Positions 1 to 18,549 of a stretch of DNA of 64,000 nucleotides are shown piece after piece. Under the pieces are notes generated by a model, which did not search any database, was not told the DNA's origin, and saw nothing but the letters and a program-made list of their open reading frames with translations. A program made the translations under genes and the position numbers. The first letter of the stretch is position 1; every line of letters starts with the position of its first letter. Source of the stretch: Macrostomum hystrix (lineage: Eukaryota; Animalia; Platyhelminthes); assembly GCA_950097015.1 (NCBI GenBank), contig CATNEN010000031.1, positions 2,046,001-2,110,000 on the forward strand, given 5' to 3'.

Positions 1-1171
1 ATGAAACGTTCATTATTCTGGATCGATTAATATTTATCAATTAATCAAAGTGGATAGTAAACGCTCCGGGTTTTAATTTCTACCATAATCCCACTCTTAG
101 CTGTGTTTGACCCCCCCGTTGGTCGAAAATGCTCGCATAGGCGTCCACACGGATGGCAGAATCGATGGTAAAGTACCTAGGGCGACAAAATGGAGGGATC
201 TCAAGGATAATCGGAATGGAAATCCGAAGGATTATTGCCAACTGTTCGTCTAGCGTTTGCCGAGACTCTTGGGAATCTCTCAGCCGATTGAGCTGAATAG
301 GATTTTCTTTGAATGAAAGAAGAAAATGGTTTTCTTTTTGTCAAGAAAAGGAGGAATATCCCCTCTCCGGTTCTTATCTTCCCTCGCATGAGTGAGCTGC
401 CGCCTACTTCTCATTCGGGAATTACACTTTTCTAAGCAATGCGGCCATTCGGCAGGTTTTCCAAGGCTATGTAATGAAACCTTAAAAAATTAAAACATTA
501 AAAAGTTTTTCTCCTATACGAAACCTTCACGGGCTTCTAGAATTCTGCAAATATTTTTAGTCAGAAGCTGTAAAACACTGGGTACAAATTCCTTAAGCGA
601 GACCGTCTCTGATACACTGACATATAAATATCTCTATCTATAGGACTAGGTATAGTTCACCCGTCGTAAATTATGGGTCATGCCAGACTTTATGATCGGT
701 AATTGCTTATTTATTGTTTTTATAAGCCGTCATTCTGTACTACTATGTTTGCATAGTAAGCAGTAGTATGCATGCGCATAGTGCAAAAAAATCCTGTATA
801 GTATACTTGGCGAAAGTAATGCAGTTTTCTTTAGCAAAAATATATGACCCAAATATTTCCGAGTTCCTGTCATTCTTTCTCTAAACCCCTTGGGATTTTC
901 TGGGTCTGGCTGGCTGGCTGCCAGTCCATCTTTGCTTTGCCTTAATTATGATTTTTTCTTCACCTTGCATGCGAGGCGGGCAGTTATTGTACAGGTTACT
1001 TTGCGATGATTCACACCTGTTCAAGCCTGATTCTCTGGCTAAGGATTTAGTTTTGTAGGGCTAAATTATGAAATTTGCCATCATCTACAGATCATCCACG
1101 TTGTATGCTCTACATCTACAGATCCTCAACCTTGATCGCTTACATCAGATCTTGAATCTTGAAATCCCCTT

Positions 1172-1450
1172 ATCTACAGATCCTCAATATTGAATCCCCT
1201 ATGTCTACGGATCCTCAATATTGAATCCTCTATATCTACAGATCCTCAATATTGAATCCCCTATATCTTCAGATCCTGGATCTAGAAATCCCAATTATCT
1301 ACAGATCCTCGATCTAGAAATTCCAATTATCTACAGATCCTCAATCTAGAAATCCCAATTATCTACAGATCCTTAATCTAGAAATCCCAATTATCTACAG
1401 ATCCTCGATCTAGAAATCCCACTAATCTACCGATCCTCAATATTGAATCC
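1172..1450. repeat. Minisatellite, ~38-39 bp unit (ATCTACAGATCCTCAATCTAGAAATCCCAATT-like)
   Basis: Tandem copies visible directly; degenerate copies continue to just before the 1531 acceptor. Confidence 0.85.
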
Positions 1451-1531
1451 CCATTATACACAGTTCCTGAAACTTGAATCCCCTTGATTTAAAGATCCTC
1501 AGTGTCAAATCCCCTCAACCCGCTCCACCAG

Positions 1532-4500
1532 TCTGCAGCCCGACCTGCACCGCTGAGGAGTTTGAGCAGTCGCCCTGCCTGGGCTCGCACAACCGTCGGT
1601 GCGCCCCGAAGTCGCAGCTGCCCGGCCTGTCGCCGGACCGGGCTCCGCACCAGGGCCCGGACGCCAACCTCATCTGGGAGGACCTCGCCACGGCGGACGC
1701 CGCAGCGTCAGCCTCGCCCGCCGGCCTCTCGGTCGACATCGCCTGGGACTCGGAGCGACGTCAGCAGGCTACGCTTCGCCGCTCAGGCGCCTTCACAATC
1801 GCCGTCACCCTAGAGGAGATGAGCTTCGGCGTGGAACTGTTGCCGGTGAATCATTCGGTTGCCAATAGCAACGCGGCCTACCTGCGCCGAACGGACCTGC
1901 CGCCGGGTCAGGCCCAGGGCAATCTCGCTAGCCGCTGTCCTTATCCTTTGCCTCTGGCCTACGTTTTGACTTCGCACGAATCGGCGCCAAATCTTCTGAG
2001 CATGGGCGAACTGGACAAGCAACTGCCCGGATATTCGCCAACCCTGAAGGAGTGCATGACCTACGAGCACTGGAACAAGCCGCCAGAGCGATGGAACCTC
2101 GGCTCCCTTCCCGGAGTTGTGTGCGCCGCGCCCTGCCGACTGACCGACTTGTTTAGCGACAGCGCCGACCTGTCTGGGCACGAGGGCACCCTGGTTGTCA
2201 GCCAGCCGTTCTGCAAACTGGTCAGCAACAAAATAAACTGGAAATATCTTAGCAGTCATGCGTTTTAAACCTATATTGGGGCATGTTTTCTTTTGCTGAT
2301 TCAAAGGCGGTTTCTTTCGATTCTTCGGCAGTTTCTTCTGATTCTTCGGCAGTTTCTTCTGACTTTTCGGCAGTTTCTTCTGATTCTTCGGCAGTTTCTT
2401 CTGATTCTTCGGCAGTTTCTTCTGAATCTACGGCGGTTTCTTCTGATTCTTCGGCAGTTTCTTCTGATTCTTCGGCAGTTTCTTCTGATTCTTCGGCAGT
2501 TTCTTCTTATTCTTCAGTGGTACTGATTTTTTCGACAATTCATTTTTCTGACTGTTTAGCAGAATTTTTCAGATTTTTTTAGAACGTCTTGTTGTTCGGC
2601 AGTTTTCTTTGTCAGATTTTCAGCGGTTTCCAGATCAGATTTTTAGGCGGCTTCTTAGTCAGTTTGAGCCTGTTTGAGTCGTTAATTTACACCTGCTAAT
2701 TCTATGCAAAAATGACAAAATTCTCACCACCAGCACCTGGAAGACTGTCAGAGCTGCCTGCTAAAGTGCAGCAGGCCGGTCAGTCACGGCCACCCGGCCT
2801 GCGCCATCACCACAGACGAGCTGGACGACGGCTGGTCGCCAAAGCTGGCCGAGTGCTACACCTGCTGCGCCAGGGACAACTGCACTGACGCCTGCGACAA
2901 ATACTACACGCCCAACTGCAAGACCTTCCGCTGCATGAACGGCACCTTCTTCTATTACACCATGCAGCCTGTCTGGGCGCCGGGGGCCGAGTCGTTCCAC
3001 TGTCACGTGACACCTAAGCCTGGCCAGGTGCTGTACAAAGCCACCGCCGTTGTCACCTACGAGCGGCTGTCTCTGAAGCGCACTTTGGCAATCGAGGCTC
3101 GCATTGACGACAGCGGGCGGCCGGGACCCGCCACCAGACAGTTTGATTCCGTGATCAACGCCACCCTGCATGCCGGGCCGCCCGACCAGCTGCCCGATGT
3201 CGTCGGCGGCGTCGGCGAGGGCAGCGGCGGCGTCCTGCACGCTGGCTATTGGCGCGGCGGTCAGGTCGGACAAAGTCTGGACAATGTGCGCATGGCAAAG
3301 GTCACTAGGTGAGTCTTGGAGGATTTGGTCTCGTCTTTTCTCTTATTCTTCATCGGTTTGCATGTCGATGTTTTCATGCATTTCTTCTGTGTGTTTTAAT
3401 CTGTTTTGGTCGGTTTCATGTTACTGTGCATGTTTGTGTTGCTATGCAGGTTTTTTTCGTATCGATTTTACTTCAGAAACTTATATATTTTTAACTTTAA
3501 GGAAGTTTTTTCGTCCGATTCTTCGGGAGTTTTCTTCGTCCGATTCTTCGGGAGTTTTCTTCGTCCGATTCTTCGGGAGTTTTCTTCGTCCGATTCTTTG
3601 TTGGTTTCTTCGTCCGATTCTTTGGGAGTTTTCTTCGTCCGATTCTTCGGGAGTTTTCTTCGTCCGATTCTTCGGGAGTTTTCTTCGTCCGATTCTTCGG
3701 GAGTTTTCTTCGTCCGATTCTTCGGGAGTTTTCTTCGTCCGATTCTTTGTTGGTTTCTTCGTCCGATTCTTTGGGAGTTTTCTTCGTCCGATTCTTCGTG
3801 AGTTTTCTTCTTCCGATTCTTCCGGAGTTTTCTTCGTCCGATTCTTCGGGAGTTTTCTTCGTCCGATTCTTTGGCAGTTTTCTTCGTCCGATTCTTCGGG
3901 AGTTTTCTTCTTCCGATTCTTCGGGAGTTTTCTTCGTCCGATTCTTTGTTGGTTTCTTCGTCCGATTCTACGGCAGTTTTCTTCGTCCGATTCTTCGGGA
4001 GTTTTTCTTCGTCCGATTCTTTGTTGCTTTCTTCGTCCGATTCTTCGGGAGTTTTCTTCGTCCGATTCTTTGTTGGTTTCTTCGTTCGATTCTTCGGAAG
4101 TTTTCTTCGTCCGATTCTTCGGGAGGTTTCTTCGTCGGATTCTTCGGGACTTTTTTTCATCTGATTCTTCGATAGTTTTTTTCGCCGGATCCTTTTTTTC
4201 GGGAAAAATATTTTTCCTTCGAATTTTAAATCTGAGCATTCGCAACGCCAACAACCCGCAGGTCCATCACGGTGTGGCCAGCCGCACCCATGGCTGTCAC
4301 TGCGGACCAATGGAATCGCACCGCCTGTTCGCAGGCCGACGCCATCCTGGCCAACATGCGCGGCGATGTCGGCTCATCCGCTTCCCTCAGCGCCGCCGAT
4401 GCGTCAGCCACTCCGGCTACCTTTGAGCCGGCGGCCGACCTGCAGGTGGACAAGCTGACCGGCCTGGCCTATCGGGTCAGGCGGCGCGGCTCGCAGCCTC

Positions 4501-12040: not shown

Positions 12041-12748
12041 GGTTTACGATCATTTTTCCACCCGTATTTCGGTTCACGATCCCCCTGTATTTTTCCATTT
12101 CAGTGATCATGGCCTGCTCGAAAGAAGCAAAAATTGAGAAACCAGGATTATTCGTTTCACTGGAAAAACTGAACGGAATAGCCGACCTAGTTTCTCCCAT
12201 GGCATGGCGATTCGTTGACAAAGGAAATTGGATTTCACTACTTCAAGCCGAAGGTCTTCTAGCTGAGTCAATGTCGTGTCTAACATGCGGTAGCGCAATG
12301 AAACTGACGCCTGCGCACAACACTGCAGACGGCCTCGTTTTTCGGTGCAAAACCAACAATACGTCTCCCTTTGGTGCCCATGTAAAACGCGTATCCATCC
12401 GGAAATCCATAGCAAAGCGAAATTCAAGTCAATGCAAGGAACGTCAGCTGTCCATTTTGCTTTGCATCTCGTCGAGCAGATGTATCGAACTCACCAAAGC
12501 AGCAAAGAGCCACGCGAACTTGTGAAGCAGTTCTGGAACGACCTGAAGGCAGTCTATTCGTGTGCGGCGCCAGCAGCAGTTTCTGACAGTCGTCTGTTCG
12601 ACTTGGACCTATCGGCGATTGAAATGGCTTGAATTAACGAATTCACATGCGCTCTGAACTAACTTTGCCACTTACCCGTTACCTCCCCCCCTCAGCTTCG
12701 GTTCATGATCATTTACATGTATGTTTGCCATTTAAATGATCGTAAACC
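12041..12748 (+). mobile_element. Non-autonomous Merlin/IS1595(ISXO2)-like DNA transposon derivative
   Basis: Perfect 15-bp TIR GGTTTACGATCATTT (12041-12055) / AAATGATCGTAAACC (12734-12748). Internal ORF has the zinc-ribbon-like GLLAESMSCLTCGSAMKL...DGLVFRC...KRVSIRK typical of the N-terminus of these transposases. No DDE core and no TSD seen. Confidence 0.65.
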
Positions 12749-13629
12749 AAAGTGGATATATAGGATCCTCTTCATGGAACAGTTCTGAAACGAGTTCTGT
12801 AACAAGCAACTCTTTCAATTTGATGAATGTATGCAAATGAGCAGATCTCTTTGCATAGTTTCATTCTGGTTGGCATTCAATCATTTAACGACAGACAGAT
12901 AAAAAGGCTTGAAGTTATTTTCAGTGCTGGTTTAAAATATGATTAAAAAACACGATTTTCTTACTAGTTACTCTTGCATATCTTTCTTATCCCGCCTGGA
13001 CTTTGGTCCGCTTATTTGTCCGATTCCCATCCGATATTTGACCGATTTCCGTACGAAATTCAGAAGCGGACGAAATTCACCCGGTTTTCGTCCGATTTCG
13101 ACGTCGTACGAAGCTGCGGACCAAATATCGGGCGAATCATCCGCTTCTTTTTGATGTTTCGTCCGAATTTCATTCGATTTCTCGTCCGCTTCCATTCCAG
13201 GCCAAAAAGCGGACGAGAAAGTGGACGAGAAAGCGGATGAATTTAGGATGAGGGAAAAATTTGTCCGATCTGTCGTCCGGTTTTTTATCCGACTGTTTGT
13301 CCGCTCCAATTTCAGAAAAATGCGTGCAGGCCGATACTTTGTGAACTGTATAAATTCTTTCGCTCTTGTTTGTGTTCCGTACTGTATTCAGCGTTGGCTT
13401 AAGCCACGTTTTTTTAAACCGCTTCGTTATTGCAATTATTTCAACTGTACCATTTTGTGCTCACTTTTGACACTATTGTTAAATAATAACTGAACGAAAA
13501 TAGTAATAATAATAGTAGTATAATAGTATTAATATATAGTATTATTATAATACGTATTTTAATCCGGGCTGTCGCCCGCCTAACAACCGGACGAAGAGCG
13601 GACATGTTTCCGGGTGATAGTGGATATAT

Positions 13630-13905
13630 ATATACACAGAAGACTCACGGTCTTCTTCCTTCACACACAGGCAGGCATACATACACAGAAGACTCAAGGT
13701 CTTCTTCCTTCACACACAGGCAGGCATATATAAACAGAAGACTCACGGTCTTCTTCCTTCACACACAGGCAGGCATATATATACACAGAAGACTCACGGT
13801 CTTCTTCCTTCACACACAGGCAGGCATATATAAACAGAAGACTCACGGTCTTCTTCCTTCACACACAGGCAGGCATATATACACAGAAGACTCACGGTCT
13901 TCTCC
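13630..13905. repeat. Tandem repeat, 49-51 bp unit x6, containing a splice acceptor
   Basis: CAGAAGACTC recurs at 13637, 13686, 13735, 13786, 13835 and 13884. Confidence 0.9.
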
Positions 13906-15047
13906 GCGAACTCCAAACAGAGCAGCGGCGCGCTGCCACACTGGAGCACAGAGCGGCGCAGTGCAACGGCTTAATTACGCAAGCCTCGACCTTGCTCTGT
14001 GGCAACGTCTCGGCAGCGACAGTCGTCCTGCCCGACGAACATTCAGAGGAAGAAGCCGTCCAAGCCGAGCAGCGTCAGGATAGCGAGGCAGACTTTGCAG
14101 TACAAATCGACACGTGCTTGTCAGCTGCACAGACACGTGCACTGCTCAATGTGTGTGCGAAAAGCTCCGCAGCGGGTGAAGCGTCGTCTTCCGACTCCTC
14201 TTTGAAAGTGCCGCTGTCGGAAAAGCAGCCGTACGTCCTTGTCAAACAAAAAAGAAAAATGGAGCTGCAGACGACCTTGCAGAATTGGAAGGATGTTGTC
14301 GTTAAGACGAGTGCCGAGTTGGTCCACACGGAGGAGCACATGGAGATGCGCAGCACTGCACGTCTGACAGTGATACGCAGCCTTCTTCGATGCCTGTTTA
14401 GCGACGCGGAGTTTACTAACAGCTCCATCTCCGGTCGCAAGTCACGGGGCCGTGTCTGCCTGGCAGCCAATCCGGCGAAGATTGCCACCGCGGAACTGTG
14501 GCTGTCAGCTGAAGGCGTTGACTACCGTCCGCGCGATTTTAAGCGGTCGTTCAACAGGTGCGAAGATAAATATATAAATGCTGCTTCTATACCTTTATAT
14601 TAAAGGCGCTCCGCTCCGCTCTTTAATACTCGTATAAAGCTATAGAAGCAGCGCTTAGCACCTTACCTTAGCGCTAATTGGTGCAGCTAGGTTTTAACTA
14701 TTCATTCCAGGTGCACTGAGACGGCTCGAAAGCGCGCCGGACAATCGGTCAGTACGACAGTAGCAAGCAGTGGACGGCGTGCTGTAGGCAATAAAAAGCC
14801 GATACGCAAGCGCAGCGCGAAAGTAGCTGCGAAGACGACATCAACATCGGCAGCAAGCTCCTCAGCTTCAGTGGTACTCCGTGTTATCACTGAAGGCGAG
14901 GCGGATGAGGCAGAGTCGCACGCCTTGCCTATTTCCTCGATGACGACATCTGCCAATCAAATCGTTTCTGATGTCAATCAGCTCATGGGCGACGAGCGTG
15001 CTGAACATGCTGAACAGGACATGCTGAACGTCTTGCTCGTTTCATGA
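13887..15047 (+). CDS. BEN-domain protein (coiled coil, BEN domain, basic/low-complexity tail); 5' end unresolved
   Basis: Exon ~13887-14557 (AG|gtgcga) splices in phase 2 to 14711-15047 (ttccag|G...TGA). The joined frame is open: IRSLLRCLFSDAEFTNSSISGRKSRGRVCLAANPAKI...FKRSFNRCTETARKR, matching the BEN pattern from memory. Confidence 0.65.
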
Positions 15048-16319
15048 ACTGCAGTTAGTGTGGTACAAGGATCGTAACATATGTTAGATAGATCGTAACA
15101 TACAACCGAAATATTTCGGTTGTAGGATTCTAGGATTTCCGGTTCTTTAATCGGTTATTAGGAAAAATGAAAATTTTATGATTACAGTCAGGATTGAAGC
15201 GGCTCTCCTTTTGGGCCGGGGACCGCTTGGCTCAGCTCGAGCTCGCGAGGCTGGGCACTTGTTTAATTTGGGTCATAGGTATGTCCGCCACAAGATCTTT
15301 GACGTTCGAATTCGGGATCTTTGATAATTATTTCCAGGATGTAGGACTCTTCTTTATAATTTTTTGTTTGCGAATCGATCTACATATTACTGGCTTTGGG
15401 ATCTTTCATATACTACATTTTGTTTCTGGGATTATGTGGTTAGCAGCTAGAATTTCGTGTCGTTCTGTTTTATCATTTTTCTTATCCTTTATCCAGCTTA
15501 TCATTTATCCTTATCCTATAATTTTTCATTTATCTTTTTTTCGCGTCTATTATTTTTTGTAAAAAACCACAATTTGCAGTTTTCTGATTTGGAGGTTTTT
15601 TGGTACTACGCACGGCAATTTCGTGACAAAATTTGAATGTAATTATGATATGATCACACTCGAAGGAGTGATATACAGTTTGATTTGATCGAAGAGGTAT
15701 GGCCTCTGATATACAATGAGCAAATTTTACAGTTCCACTAAACATGTAATATAATGGACTGTATTAGCAATAGGCTAATATTAGCAACATCATGGGAAGC
15801 TATGTGTAGTACCCTTTTTCCTCCGGGTTCGATCTTTCCAACTTGATTCCCTGTTATGTCGATCAAACCCATACATTAGTATTGCCTAAATCTGTATACA
15901 CATATTTTTAAAGTGATGTGTTCACTTTTCAACTTTAAAACAACATTTTGCAAACTTAAAAGTCAACCATTTCGAGGCCGCCTTCCAAAACTACACTAGT
16001 AACACTTGTCTAGTACACTTCCTAAAGCAATGTTTTTGTGCTTTTTTGGCCATTTTGCAATTTGACAATTTACAGCATTTGTCACTCAATACGTCTCTAT
16101 TCTGTCCCTCAATATATGCATTTTTGCTGCTTGGCTTCAATTTAATACATTTCTTATATACTCGGTGAATAAACTGAAATACAATTTACAGTGCCAGTCT
16201 GGATGCCAAGAATATACATAGTACGTCAATTTTTGCTATTTTCACAAATTAATCGACACCATTGTGGCTACGCTATTATTTTAGGCCTTCACTTACTTTT
16301 CTGTCCGCGTTTAACCGGC

Positions 16320-16575
16320 TTTTAATCTGCCTGCTTGTCCGAATCGCCAAATGAAGCGATTTGGTCCGCATTTCACCCGCTTCTAATCCGCCTGCTCGTC
16401 CGAATCGCCAAATGAAGCGATTTGGTCCGCATTTCACCCGCTTTTAATCCGCCTGCTCGTCCGAATCGCCAAATGAAGCGATTTGGTCCACATTTCACCC
16501 GCTTTTAATCCGCCTGCTCGTCCGAATCGCCAAATGAAGCGATTTGGTCCACATTTCACCCGCTTTTGATCCGCC
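16320..16575. repeat. 60 bp tandem repeat x4 in the right subterminal region of the TIR element
   Basis: Exact 60-bp period; each unit contains GTCCG motifs. Confidence 0.9.
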
Positions 16576-18549
16576 TGCTTGTCTGATTTGTTTAGTCAGT
16601 GCTAAAGTGAAACGGACGAAGCATCGGCAGATAAACGGATCAAACACCGGACTAACGAGCGGACGAACGTCACATGAGGTGAAGTTTTCGTCCGCTTTCG
16701 TAACTTTTCGTCCGCTTCGTCCGATTTTTCCTAATGGAAAAAATACATTATCAACCGGACGAACTATCGGATAAGTGAGCGGACAAAAGAACCGGACAAA
16801 AGTCCAGGCGGGATGGGGATCCTCACCAATTTCAGGGATTTTAAACCAAAGGAATGCCAACTTTTATTGTATTTACTAAAAAATTGTTGTATAGCTGTCA
16901 TAATGCTTTAGCAACAGCATATAAATTTGATAGTAATGTAGCTACTTATTTTTTAGTACCAAAAATGATAGCTAACTATTAATATCCATATTTTCAAAGA
17001 CAGTCTATTACTTAATGCATTTAAATGTATTGTTGTAAGCAATTTGTACTAGCCATAGTTAATTTAGACCTATATTGAACAAATTTTAAGGCTTTGTAAT
17101 GTGACAATGTGATGTGACTAAGTAGCTTGACTTGCTTAGCTAACTCACTGAAGTGACTTGCTCAGGTGTAAATTTGTTTGATGTTAAAACTAATACTATA
17201 GGGAATAAGCCAAAAATGTGTTCTACTTAATATTATGTTATAACAAAGTTTGTGTAACAGCCTTTTTGATTAGGTGAATATTAATAAAAAACAAGCAATA
17301 AGCCAATAAGCATATCATTAAACTTGATTACACAATTCATTTGCCCTTCTGCCTTTTCTAAATATCCATAGCCTTACCTATAACCTATACATACTTGAAT
17401 ATTGTGCCAGACCAGTAAGACCCCAAATACCAAGCTGGGGTATAAAAAAGTCTATTATATTTAATATATTAATATATTAAAGCGCCAATGGGTGCAATTA
17501 AAAACAAAGCACAAGCAGGGCATGCTAATCGCAACCTAATAAAACAAATTAAGTAAAAAATGTAATGATTCATGGCAATGCTGTCTAAACACACTATACT
17601 GCAAATATGCCTTAATCGATAACAACCGATACTTTAAACTGAAGTCCCAGCCATAGCTTTATGGATAGCCAGGTTCAGTTAAAAAAGGGAATATCTATAT
17701 ATTTTATAGATATGAATGAAGTTGGCATGAGTTCTTTAGCAAATTAAATTGATATTGATATATTTAGTTTTCTTCACATCAATTAGCCTACATCACAGTA
17801 CAACAAATTCCAAGAATGTAATGCTGATGCCGTCTTCACTCAAACATGCGCGCATCTGTATAGTCCGGATAAGCGCATGACTACGTTCGATCGATTGACA
17901 TAAAAATGGGTGACATTCTATTTTCGAATTTCGTCGTGGCATTTATCTTGTACATGGTTAAACAATTATTGAATCCTTTTATGTATAATCGTGGCCATAT
18001 ATTTGCAGAATAATCTTTTTGCTTTTTAAATAATCAGAAAAATTATTTTCAGAAAAAGACTGAAGCTGAGTAGCAATAAAAAAACTATTTTTTTCGTTGA
18101 TCAGTGCATATCAGGTGTAAAAATTTGTAATTTCGATGTAATTCACTTATATTGTAACGTTAGGTGGAACTAGCTTACGACTGATGTCAGACGCCAAAGC
18201 TGGCCGAATTAAAATAATATATGTTTGTTTGCGAGTGAGAGATCGTAATCAGTTAAATTAAAGTATAGACTAAAGCGATAAGGTACGCAATGAGCGTAGC
18301 GAATCTTGAGCGAATACGCAATATACACTGTATTACCAAGGACCAGAAGTGGTCCTTGTGTATTACCCATGGATAGTCCAATTTTGGCTACTTTCGTGCC
18401 ATATACTTTATTATATAAAAATTTAATATATATAAGATACAGCTATAGACCTATTAAAATCAGTGGTCCTAATTGTATCTTATATCCATGCAAGGCGTGC
18501 AAGGACGTATCGCTCGTATGCATGCTGTAACTAATTTGCAGCGATTCCC

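Follow-up and report, generated by a model that had tools for sequence, protein, structure and literature searches.

A chimeric, internally deleted copy, most probably of a two-gene CMC transposon with a BEN-fold partner protein, in the flatworm Macrostomum hystrix

What kind of mobile element carries a gene for a DNA-binding protein and no transposase? The question is raised by positions 12991-16812 of a 64-kb stretch of the Macrostomum hystrix genome (contig CATNEN010000031.1, 2,046,001 to 2,110,000, forward strand), hereafter the window; plain coordinates below are those of the window, and features that have an orientation lie on its forward strand. An earlier, sequence-only reading took this segment for a transposon with terminal inverted repeats (TIRs) whose only recognisable cargo is a spliced BEN-domain gene, and proposed a semi-autonomous element with a regulator of its own and a borrowed transposase. 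We consider it highly probable that the segment is instead a chimeric and non-autonomous copy with an internal deletion, and that the element from which it derives is a two-gene cut-and-paste transposon, present in few copies, of the CMC (EnSpm/CACTA-Mirage-Chapaev) group. At full length this element would measure about 8-10 kb, with CCCGCCTGG...CCAGGCGGG ends, a 2-bp target-site duplication (TSD) and subterminal TTYGTCCGMTT arrays. It would carry gene A, for a DDE (aspartate-aspartate-glutamate) transposase, and gene B, which follows in the same orientation some 4.5-5 kb further downstream; gene B would comprise an upstream exon, a coiled-coil region and, at the C-terminus, a BEN-fold domain. 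The window copy would have lost everything from element position 508 to the first part of the gene B main exon, and the gap would have been patched with 354 bp copied from an element of a sister family.

That 12991-16812 is a real cut-and-paste transposon insertion follows from its borders. The ends form an inverted repeat of 29 nt (12989-13017 and 16786-16814, 90% identity, with an AT on each side included), and the element's own inverted repeat opens with a 14-nt perfect core, CCCGCCTGGACTTT. The 20-bp TIRs with CCC...GGG ends that had been read from the letters were recovered, the left one, CCCGCCTGGACTTTGGTCCG, at 12991-13010 and the right one at 16793-16812, the latter terminating a 3' subterminal zone (16584-16812) with nine GTCCG/CGGAC motifs; judging by other copies of the element, the ends are approximately 20/21 identical. 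Beyond the element ends, the terminal core CCCGCCTGG has no second occurrence in the 64-kb window. The AT dinucleotides flanking the element (12989-12990 and 16813-16814) are a true 2-bp TSD, because the insertion interrupts another repeat whose paralogues show a 2-bp overlap of the flank matches. Our genome-wide searches covered the 220-Mb assembly, and in it three paralogous empty sites were found at which the two flank matches overlap by exactly 2 bp: on C9 (965177-965470 and 965469-965513), on C1 (3937695-3937952 and 3937651-3937696) and on C3 (15866034-15866259 and 15865987-15866035). Other copies have 2-bp TSDs of different sequence (GC in C25 and GT in C30, and TA in C39 and GG in C12 among sister elements), and the C41 copy, one end of which is mutated, has an imperfect one (GG/GA). 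Altogether the TSD is 2 bp in 5/6 complete elements and at the 3 empty sites, which lies within the short range (2-5 bp) of CMC elements. The host repeat at the insertion site (12600-12990 and 16813-16860) is itself dispersed, with 37 genome matches, three of which serve as the empty sites.

Genome searches with the element also recovered its longer relatives. Two long copies, C25:3641442-3651367 (9,926 bp) and C41:1510638-1519019 (8,382 bp), match element positions 1-508 and 909-3822, with 4.3-6.5 kb of extra DNA between, and this extra internal DNA holds gene A. The sequence common to them and the window copy includes the 5' terminal region (12991-13498; 96-99% identity to C25, C41 and C30) and an internal 3' non-coding region (15048-16302) with no open reading frame (ORF) of note. 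The remaining relatives from the same search are a 1,031-bp copy on C30 that resembles a miniature inverted-repeat transposable element (MITE), two solo right ends and a 214-bp mini-copy. Sister elements with readable ends (C39, about 8.0 kb, and C12) have both genes inside CCCGCTTGGC...GCCAAGCGGG, together with GTCCG arrays and 2-bp TSDs. Further TIR-bounded copies, TSDs, empty sites and longer members with a DDE transposase, which the sequence-only reading had named among the checks to make, were thus all found, the last in the form of C25 (9.9 kb), C41 (8.4 kb) and a dozen or more sister elements in which both genes are present. In-frame, coding-like tandem repeats of 21 bp and 18 bp (PTAVSAP and DGSADDGS runs) also occur in these relatives (L048 4563-5370, from C41; L056 920-1793, from C39); in C41 they are found in the stretch that separates gene B from what is left of gene A, in C39 they fall in the N-terminal part of the gene A frame, and they differ in length among copies.

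Gene A is, on sequence grounds, a CMC-type DDE transposase and kin to Transposase_21. The N-terminal gene A ORF of C41 (272 aa) matches approximately 20 paralogous loci, some of them open over 600-999 aa. Our reasoning for the assignment is that: (i) in the ESM Atlas, an 871-aa gene A fragment neighbours clusters with PF02992 (Transposase_21), DUF1258 and DUF4218; (ii) a six-sequence gene A profile (alignment A1) found 7,715 proteins in a library of 1.84 billion, and of these the sampled matches P0011, P0013 and P0022 pass the PF02992 cut-off, with DUF1258 and Plavaka as co-hits; and (iii) alignment A1 contains, in order, D...D...C-x2-C...H-x3-H-E (SDGFP, FDAPARAD, GCDKC, RHLRGHE), the last two motifs being conserved in the rows that cover them (four rows for C-x2-C; for H-x3-H-E five, among them P0001 and P0002, two proteins from outside). 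This order of motifs is the signature of the EnSpm-Mirage-Chapaev-Transib (CMCT) clade, the members of which have 2-5-bp TSDs (PMC12730594). In a word-based homologue search gene A gave two matches, and the sole named relative is a Macrostomum lignano protein. Some of the gene A profile matches co-hit DUF1258, the Mirage-like family of nematodes, and these co-hits and the 2-bp TSD are the pointers by which we call the family Mirage-like.

Within the window copy, neither gene A nor the upstream exon of gene B was found by tblastn with intact sister proteins, in agreement with the earlier observation that no transposase is visible there. The need for an outside transposase, also part of the sequence-only reading, holds as well: with gene A gone, the copy would be mobile only if the transposase of another element recognised its ends. 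Gene A has decayed in the long copies too: three frame changes divide that of C25 into four segments, and the catalytic core is missing from that of C41. No intact transposase was found among the subfamily copies recovered, and any recent movement would have needed a sister-family enzyme. The nearest sister ends show only a few base differences within the first 20; that a sister family did mobilise the subfamily is speculation on our part.

At no fewer than 12 loci gene B follows gene A in the same orientation, mostly 4-5 kb away (1.5-8 kb overall). In the sister families it has an upstream exon, an intron of approximately 120 bp and a single long exon that encodes the coiled coil and the conserved C-terminal domain. 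The BEN gene had been described as cargo; because it is located with gene A inside the ends of sister elements, we regard it rather as the family's own partner gene than as something captured from the host. A word-based homologue search with a 7-sequence alignment of gene B gave no match. The upstream exon of sister elements (L071:376-1077, L069:514-1398 and L072:533-1372) contains a conserved module, …YFLFKYS.YH.RTEVV…VLIVTAK.NR..AK.W.G.L.RGPF…, followed by C..C, and the module has no Pfam match.

What the window retains of gene B begins with a 5'-truncated remnant of the main exon (13904-14558; homology to the long copies resumes at 13899), which codes for the last part of the coiled coil and for the greater part of the BEN-fold domain (about 14109-14558). 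An in-phase GT...AG segment of 153 bp follows (14559-14711), flanked by the 7-bp direct repeat CAGGTGC and present in the window copy, C41 and C25 only. Beyond it lies the second exon (14712-15047), with the last BEN helix, a basic tail, an acidic C-terminus and a TGA stop, all conserved in C25 and C41. Sister families read through the position of the 153-bp segment (…AFTRCGETAR…) with no intron, and removal at its first GT and last AG would restore the ancestral frame exactly. The segment is probably a young, subfamily-specific intron. It contains an internal palindrome, and it looks as if an insertion or a duplication had recently produced an intron here together with its splice sites. Its identity as a known MITE or dispersed repeat was considered and set aside, a genome search having matched the three subfamily copies only. 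The two-exon ORF without stops of the sequence-only reading therefore stands in part: the frame is open across 13904-14558 and continues in frame, across the 153 bp, into 14712-15047, but it is cut at its 5' end and has no start of its own.

The same reading had recognised a coiled coil and a BEN-like domain in this ORF, and both the end of the coiled coil and a BEN-fold domain are indeed present. Comparison of a gene B domain profile with all PDB sequences gave the BEN domain of Drosophila Bsg25A over the conserved core (E=0.26), and the three ESM Atlas clusters nearest to the gene B domain are all BEN families (scores 0.86-0.88). Structural models point the same way. For an AlphaFold model of a sister copy (predicted local distance difference test score, pLDDT, 76.7), the top five Foldseek matches are BEN domains (Insv, Bsg25A and BANP; probability 0.97-0.99), and with VIA-align the first 11 rows are all BEN (Z 8.9-5.9 over approximately 100 residues), with a drop afterwards. 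A model of window exon 1 (14109-14558; pLDDT 78.7) gave BEN in rows 1-10 of the VIA-align result (Z 8.6-6.5). The exons were analysed separately, and for the last BEN helix, whose sequence crosses the junction, the assessment comes from the intron-less sister copies only. Given these models, we take the domain to have the BEN fold, in which helices form a bundle together with a short beta hairpin, and it is very probably a divergent member of the BEN family.

The sequence that replaces the missing interior of the element is what makes the window copy chimeric. Where homology to the long copies breaks off there is an AT-rich junction filler of 51 bp made of 12-bp units (13499-13549), not present in the long copies, and then filler of sister-family origin (13550-13903; 96% identity to L016). 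The latter consists of an inner subterminal piece with two GTCCG motifs and a 49-bp satellite repeated 5.6 times (13628-13903), and its match in L016 lies at C1:20956373-20956728; the end of that element reads CCCGCCTGGATAGCC. In the sister element L030 the same satellite begins directly after the splice donor with which the first transposase exon ends, and in this element at least it is thus an intronic tandem array of a transposase gene. Arrays of it occur at many loci, among them C1:20956373-20957366, C1:20970046-20970477, C39:71864-72143, C39:84310-84842 and C39:14463058-14463463. The filler and the resumed homology to the long copies overlap by 5 bp (13899-13903), which suggests template switching with microhomology, and the gap was most likely patched in this way during gap repair after excision. 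At the protein level the long copies read …KMESSLL(R/C)ELQ…, whereas the window copy has satellite-derived residues and then …LLRELQ…. The gene B remnant of the window is a promoterless fragment that lacks a start codon of its own, its first in-frame ATG being at 14260, upstream of the BEN core.

Could the remnant nevertheless be a working BEN regulator, either TnpA-like or anti-silencing, in a semi-autonomous element that borrows only a transposase? The open frame (13904-14558 and 14712-15047) with its in-phase GT...AG borders would suit such a role, as would the BEN fold still present in the window exon and the in-frame ATG at 14260, 5' of the BEN core. Against it, the transposase, the gene B upstream exon and the start of the main exon have been deleted, the native start and any promoter with them, and the open frame runs at its 5' side into satellite filler taken from a sister element. 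The ratio of nonsynonymous to synonymous substitution rates (dN/dS), a further check named by the sequence-only reading, is about 1 among copies of the subfamily, as in neutral divergence: for exon 1, comparison of the window copy with C41 gave 1.05-1.11; for exon 2 it was 0.2-0.26, from 5-10 differences only. The sole other gene-bearing copies, C25 and C41, have decayed as well. Between families the dN/dS of gene B is 0.2-0.45, with dS saturated, and this fits a gene that would have been under selection while the elements were active. From the exon 1 values and the deleted 5' part we infer that the remnant in the window is not kept by selection, and we regard a semi-autonomous element with a working regulator as improbable.

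A Pack-type, gene-capturing element, in which a fragment of a host BEN gene came to lie between transposon ends, would account for the missing transposase, and the foreign filler demonstrates that DNA was in fact acquired. The filler was however copied from another transposon and not from a host gene. Gene B, moreover, occupies the same place, 3' of the transposase and on the same strand, in the dozen or more sister elements mentioned above, which have ends and TSDs of their own, and it diverges along with those elements (32-54% identity). Pack-type elements are recognised by an internal fragment that derives from a host gene; here gene B belongs to elements of autonomous type, and we hold this origin to be very improbable indeed. 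Termini that start with CCC and finish with GGG could also call to mind a piggyBac-like element. In place of the TTAA duplication of that group, however, the TSDs are of 2 bp and variable (AT, GC, GT, TA and GG), and the family's transposase, with its C-x2-C and H-x3-H motifs, resembles Transposase_21, so that among the alternatives we give this one the least credence, which is next to none.

Against our preferred reading, a decayed and chimeric derivative of a two-gene CMC transposon, several observations have to be weighed. All the related families begin with CCCGC(C/T)TGG and the termini are CCC...GGG, not the 5'-CA...TG-3' (CACTA or CAC) usual for CMC elements; the definition in PMC12730594 has CA...TG termini 'in most cases' and is not absolute on this point. 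Pfam, applied down to E<=10 to all ORFs of the window, long and sister copies, yielded nothing of use: it gave no direct match to Transposase_21 in gene A proteins from long and sister copies, and no match to BEN (PF10523), even at E<=10, in the window exons or in full single-exon paralogues. The BEN-like domain of the sequence-only reading thus holds at the level of the fold, as detected by Foldseek and VIA-align, but not as a Pfam match, and both the CMC and the BEN assignments rest on transitive or structural evidence, since Pfam matches neither directly. Z values of 8-9 are attainable by chance among helical folds, and for this reason we speak of a BEN-fold domain and not of a proven Pfam member. 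The low dN/dS of exon 2 could mean that some residual constraint exists. Splicing of the 153-bp segment and expression from the internal ATG at 14260 are putative and read from the sequence only, and the three empty sites were deduced from match coordinates and not from the bases themselves. Finally, in a dead and truncated fragment on C28 that is 72% identical, the GTCCG columns are conserved no better (41/55) than the sequence around them (278/375).

The last of these bears on what gene B might do, and here the subterminal arrays are of particular interest. The element contains 32 GTCCG/CGGAC motifs, and 29 of them fall within 12991-13610 and 16280-16812, where approximately one would be expected from window-wide shuffles; the 'dozens' in both subterminal zones that had been noted earlier are borne out, the number being closer to 30. 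Of the extended motif, TTYGTCCGMT, the whole window has 34 occurrences, where 0.47 would be expected. On the left, 11 GTCCG motifs lie in the first 330 bp of the 5' terminal region. On the right there is a subterminal tandem array of a 61-bp unit (16303-16583; 4.6 copies), the consensus of which has two GTCCG motifs and which contains seven exact GTCCG matches. The C41 copy has roughly 16 offset copies of this unit, judged from staggered blast hits. The three sister families whose gene B proteins differ to the extent given above all retain (G/A)TCCG arrays; such retention across divergent gene B families is compatible with binding of the arrays by the BEN protein and is not proof of it. A tandem array of a different kind lies elsewhere in the window, at 3504-4184. 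It has 27 copies of a 25-bp unit, AGTTTTCTTCGTCCGATTCTTCGGG, carries the 10-mer TTCGTCCGAT of the transposon end arrays and is apparently intronic in a GC-rich host gene (donor near 3308, acceptor near 4262); a satellite descended from transposon end arrays is one possible explanation, coincidence another.

Given a two-gene system, a TnpA-like role for gene B is the natural hypothesis. A plausible scenario is that the transposase cuts at the CCC...GGG termini, while the GTCCG arrays near the ends are bound by the BEN-fold protein, which would either help to join the ends or regulate the element, as TnpA of maize En/Spm does. Sequence-specific binding of DNA is an established role of the BEN domain (Dai et al., 2013). 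That the BEN protein recognises the TTYGTCCGMTT arrays is suggested by this role and by analogy with TnpA, and the more specific proposal, that in a flatworm clade of Mirage-like CMC elements a BEN-fold protein is the sequence-specific reader of TTYGTCCGMTT and an independently evolved analogue of TnpA, is a tentative one to which we give somewhat less than an even chance.

Among the cut-and-paste transposons of eukaryotes, only a few plant elements have accessory DNA-binding proteins that are well understood. If our proposal is true, an animal CMC element with a BEN partner and family-wide arrays would be a second, independent case of a transposase working together with a reader of end arrays, and such elements would be a plausible source of the BEN-domain transcription factors of hosts. 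If the BEN protein is such a reader, truncated copies might titrate it through their arrays or, by way of the ATG at 14260, give rise to BEN-only competitors that damp transposition. The window copy itself adds less to this than an intact element would. Its value is that of a clean and well-bounded example of decay, and what it contributes is an insertion proven through empty sites, a chimeric deletion derivative and a candidate case of subfamily-specific intron gain.

With regard to precedent, our literature searches, within the library that they covered, returned no link of BEN to CMC or TIR transposons, and 'BEN + transposition' led only to a domain of the TnpA of bacterial Tn3. The host proteins that gene B most resembles are those in which BEN is the DNA-binding domain by itself (Drosophila Insensitive and Bsg25A/Elba1; human BANP, NACC1 and BEND6). 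They are the best structural matches, over approximately 90-100 residues, Bsg25A also shows the weak sequence match over the conserved core, and in Insensitive-type proteins the domain is likewise C-terminal and preceded by a coiled coil. The gene B domain differs from them in being below Pfam detection, at approximately 13-20% identity, and in being encoded by a transposon whereas they are host transcription factors. As to the transposon, animal CMC elements with 2-bp TSDs have been described (ENS1_Cis and the CMC-NA MITEs), the ends of which are 5'-CAC...GTG-3' (PMC6004678). Our family shares with this Mirage group a CMC-type transposase and short, MITE-like derivatives, such as the 1,031-bp C30 copy, but has CCC...GGG in place of the CAC...GTG ends reported there; in the papers searched, no BEN partner gene is described for that group.

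The functionally nearest known system is En/Spm. This CACTA element of maize is a two-gene system in which TnpD is the transposase and TnpA binds subterminal 12-bp motifs. The resemblance extends to a transposase of the Transposase_21-like superfamily, a short TSD, dense subterminal arrays in both orientations and a further protein, likewise encoded by the element, that has a DNA-binding domain, and the window copy, as an internally deleted non-autonomous derivative, is comparable to dSpm. There are differences as well. The partner protein here has a BEN fold and is without similarity to TnpA, and its binding to the arrays is proposed by analogy only; gene B is a separate downstream gene, whereas TnpA and TnpD are alternative splice products of one transcript; the termini are CCCGCCTGG and not CACTA, the TSD is 2 bp and not 3 bp, and the host is an animal. 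By class the family belongs to the CMC group, within which it stands out by its unusual termini and by an accessory protein of another fold.

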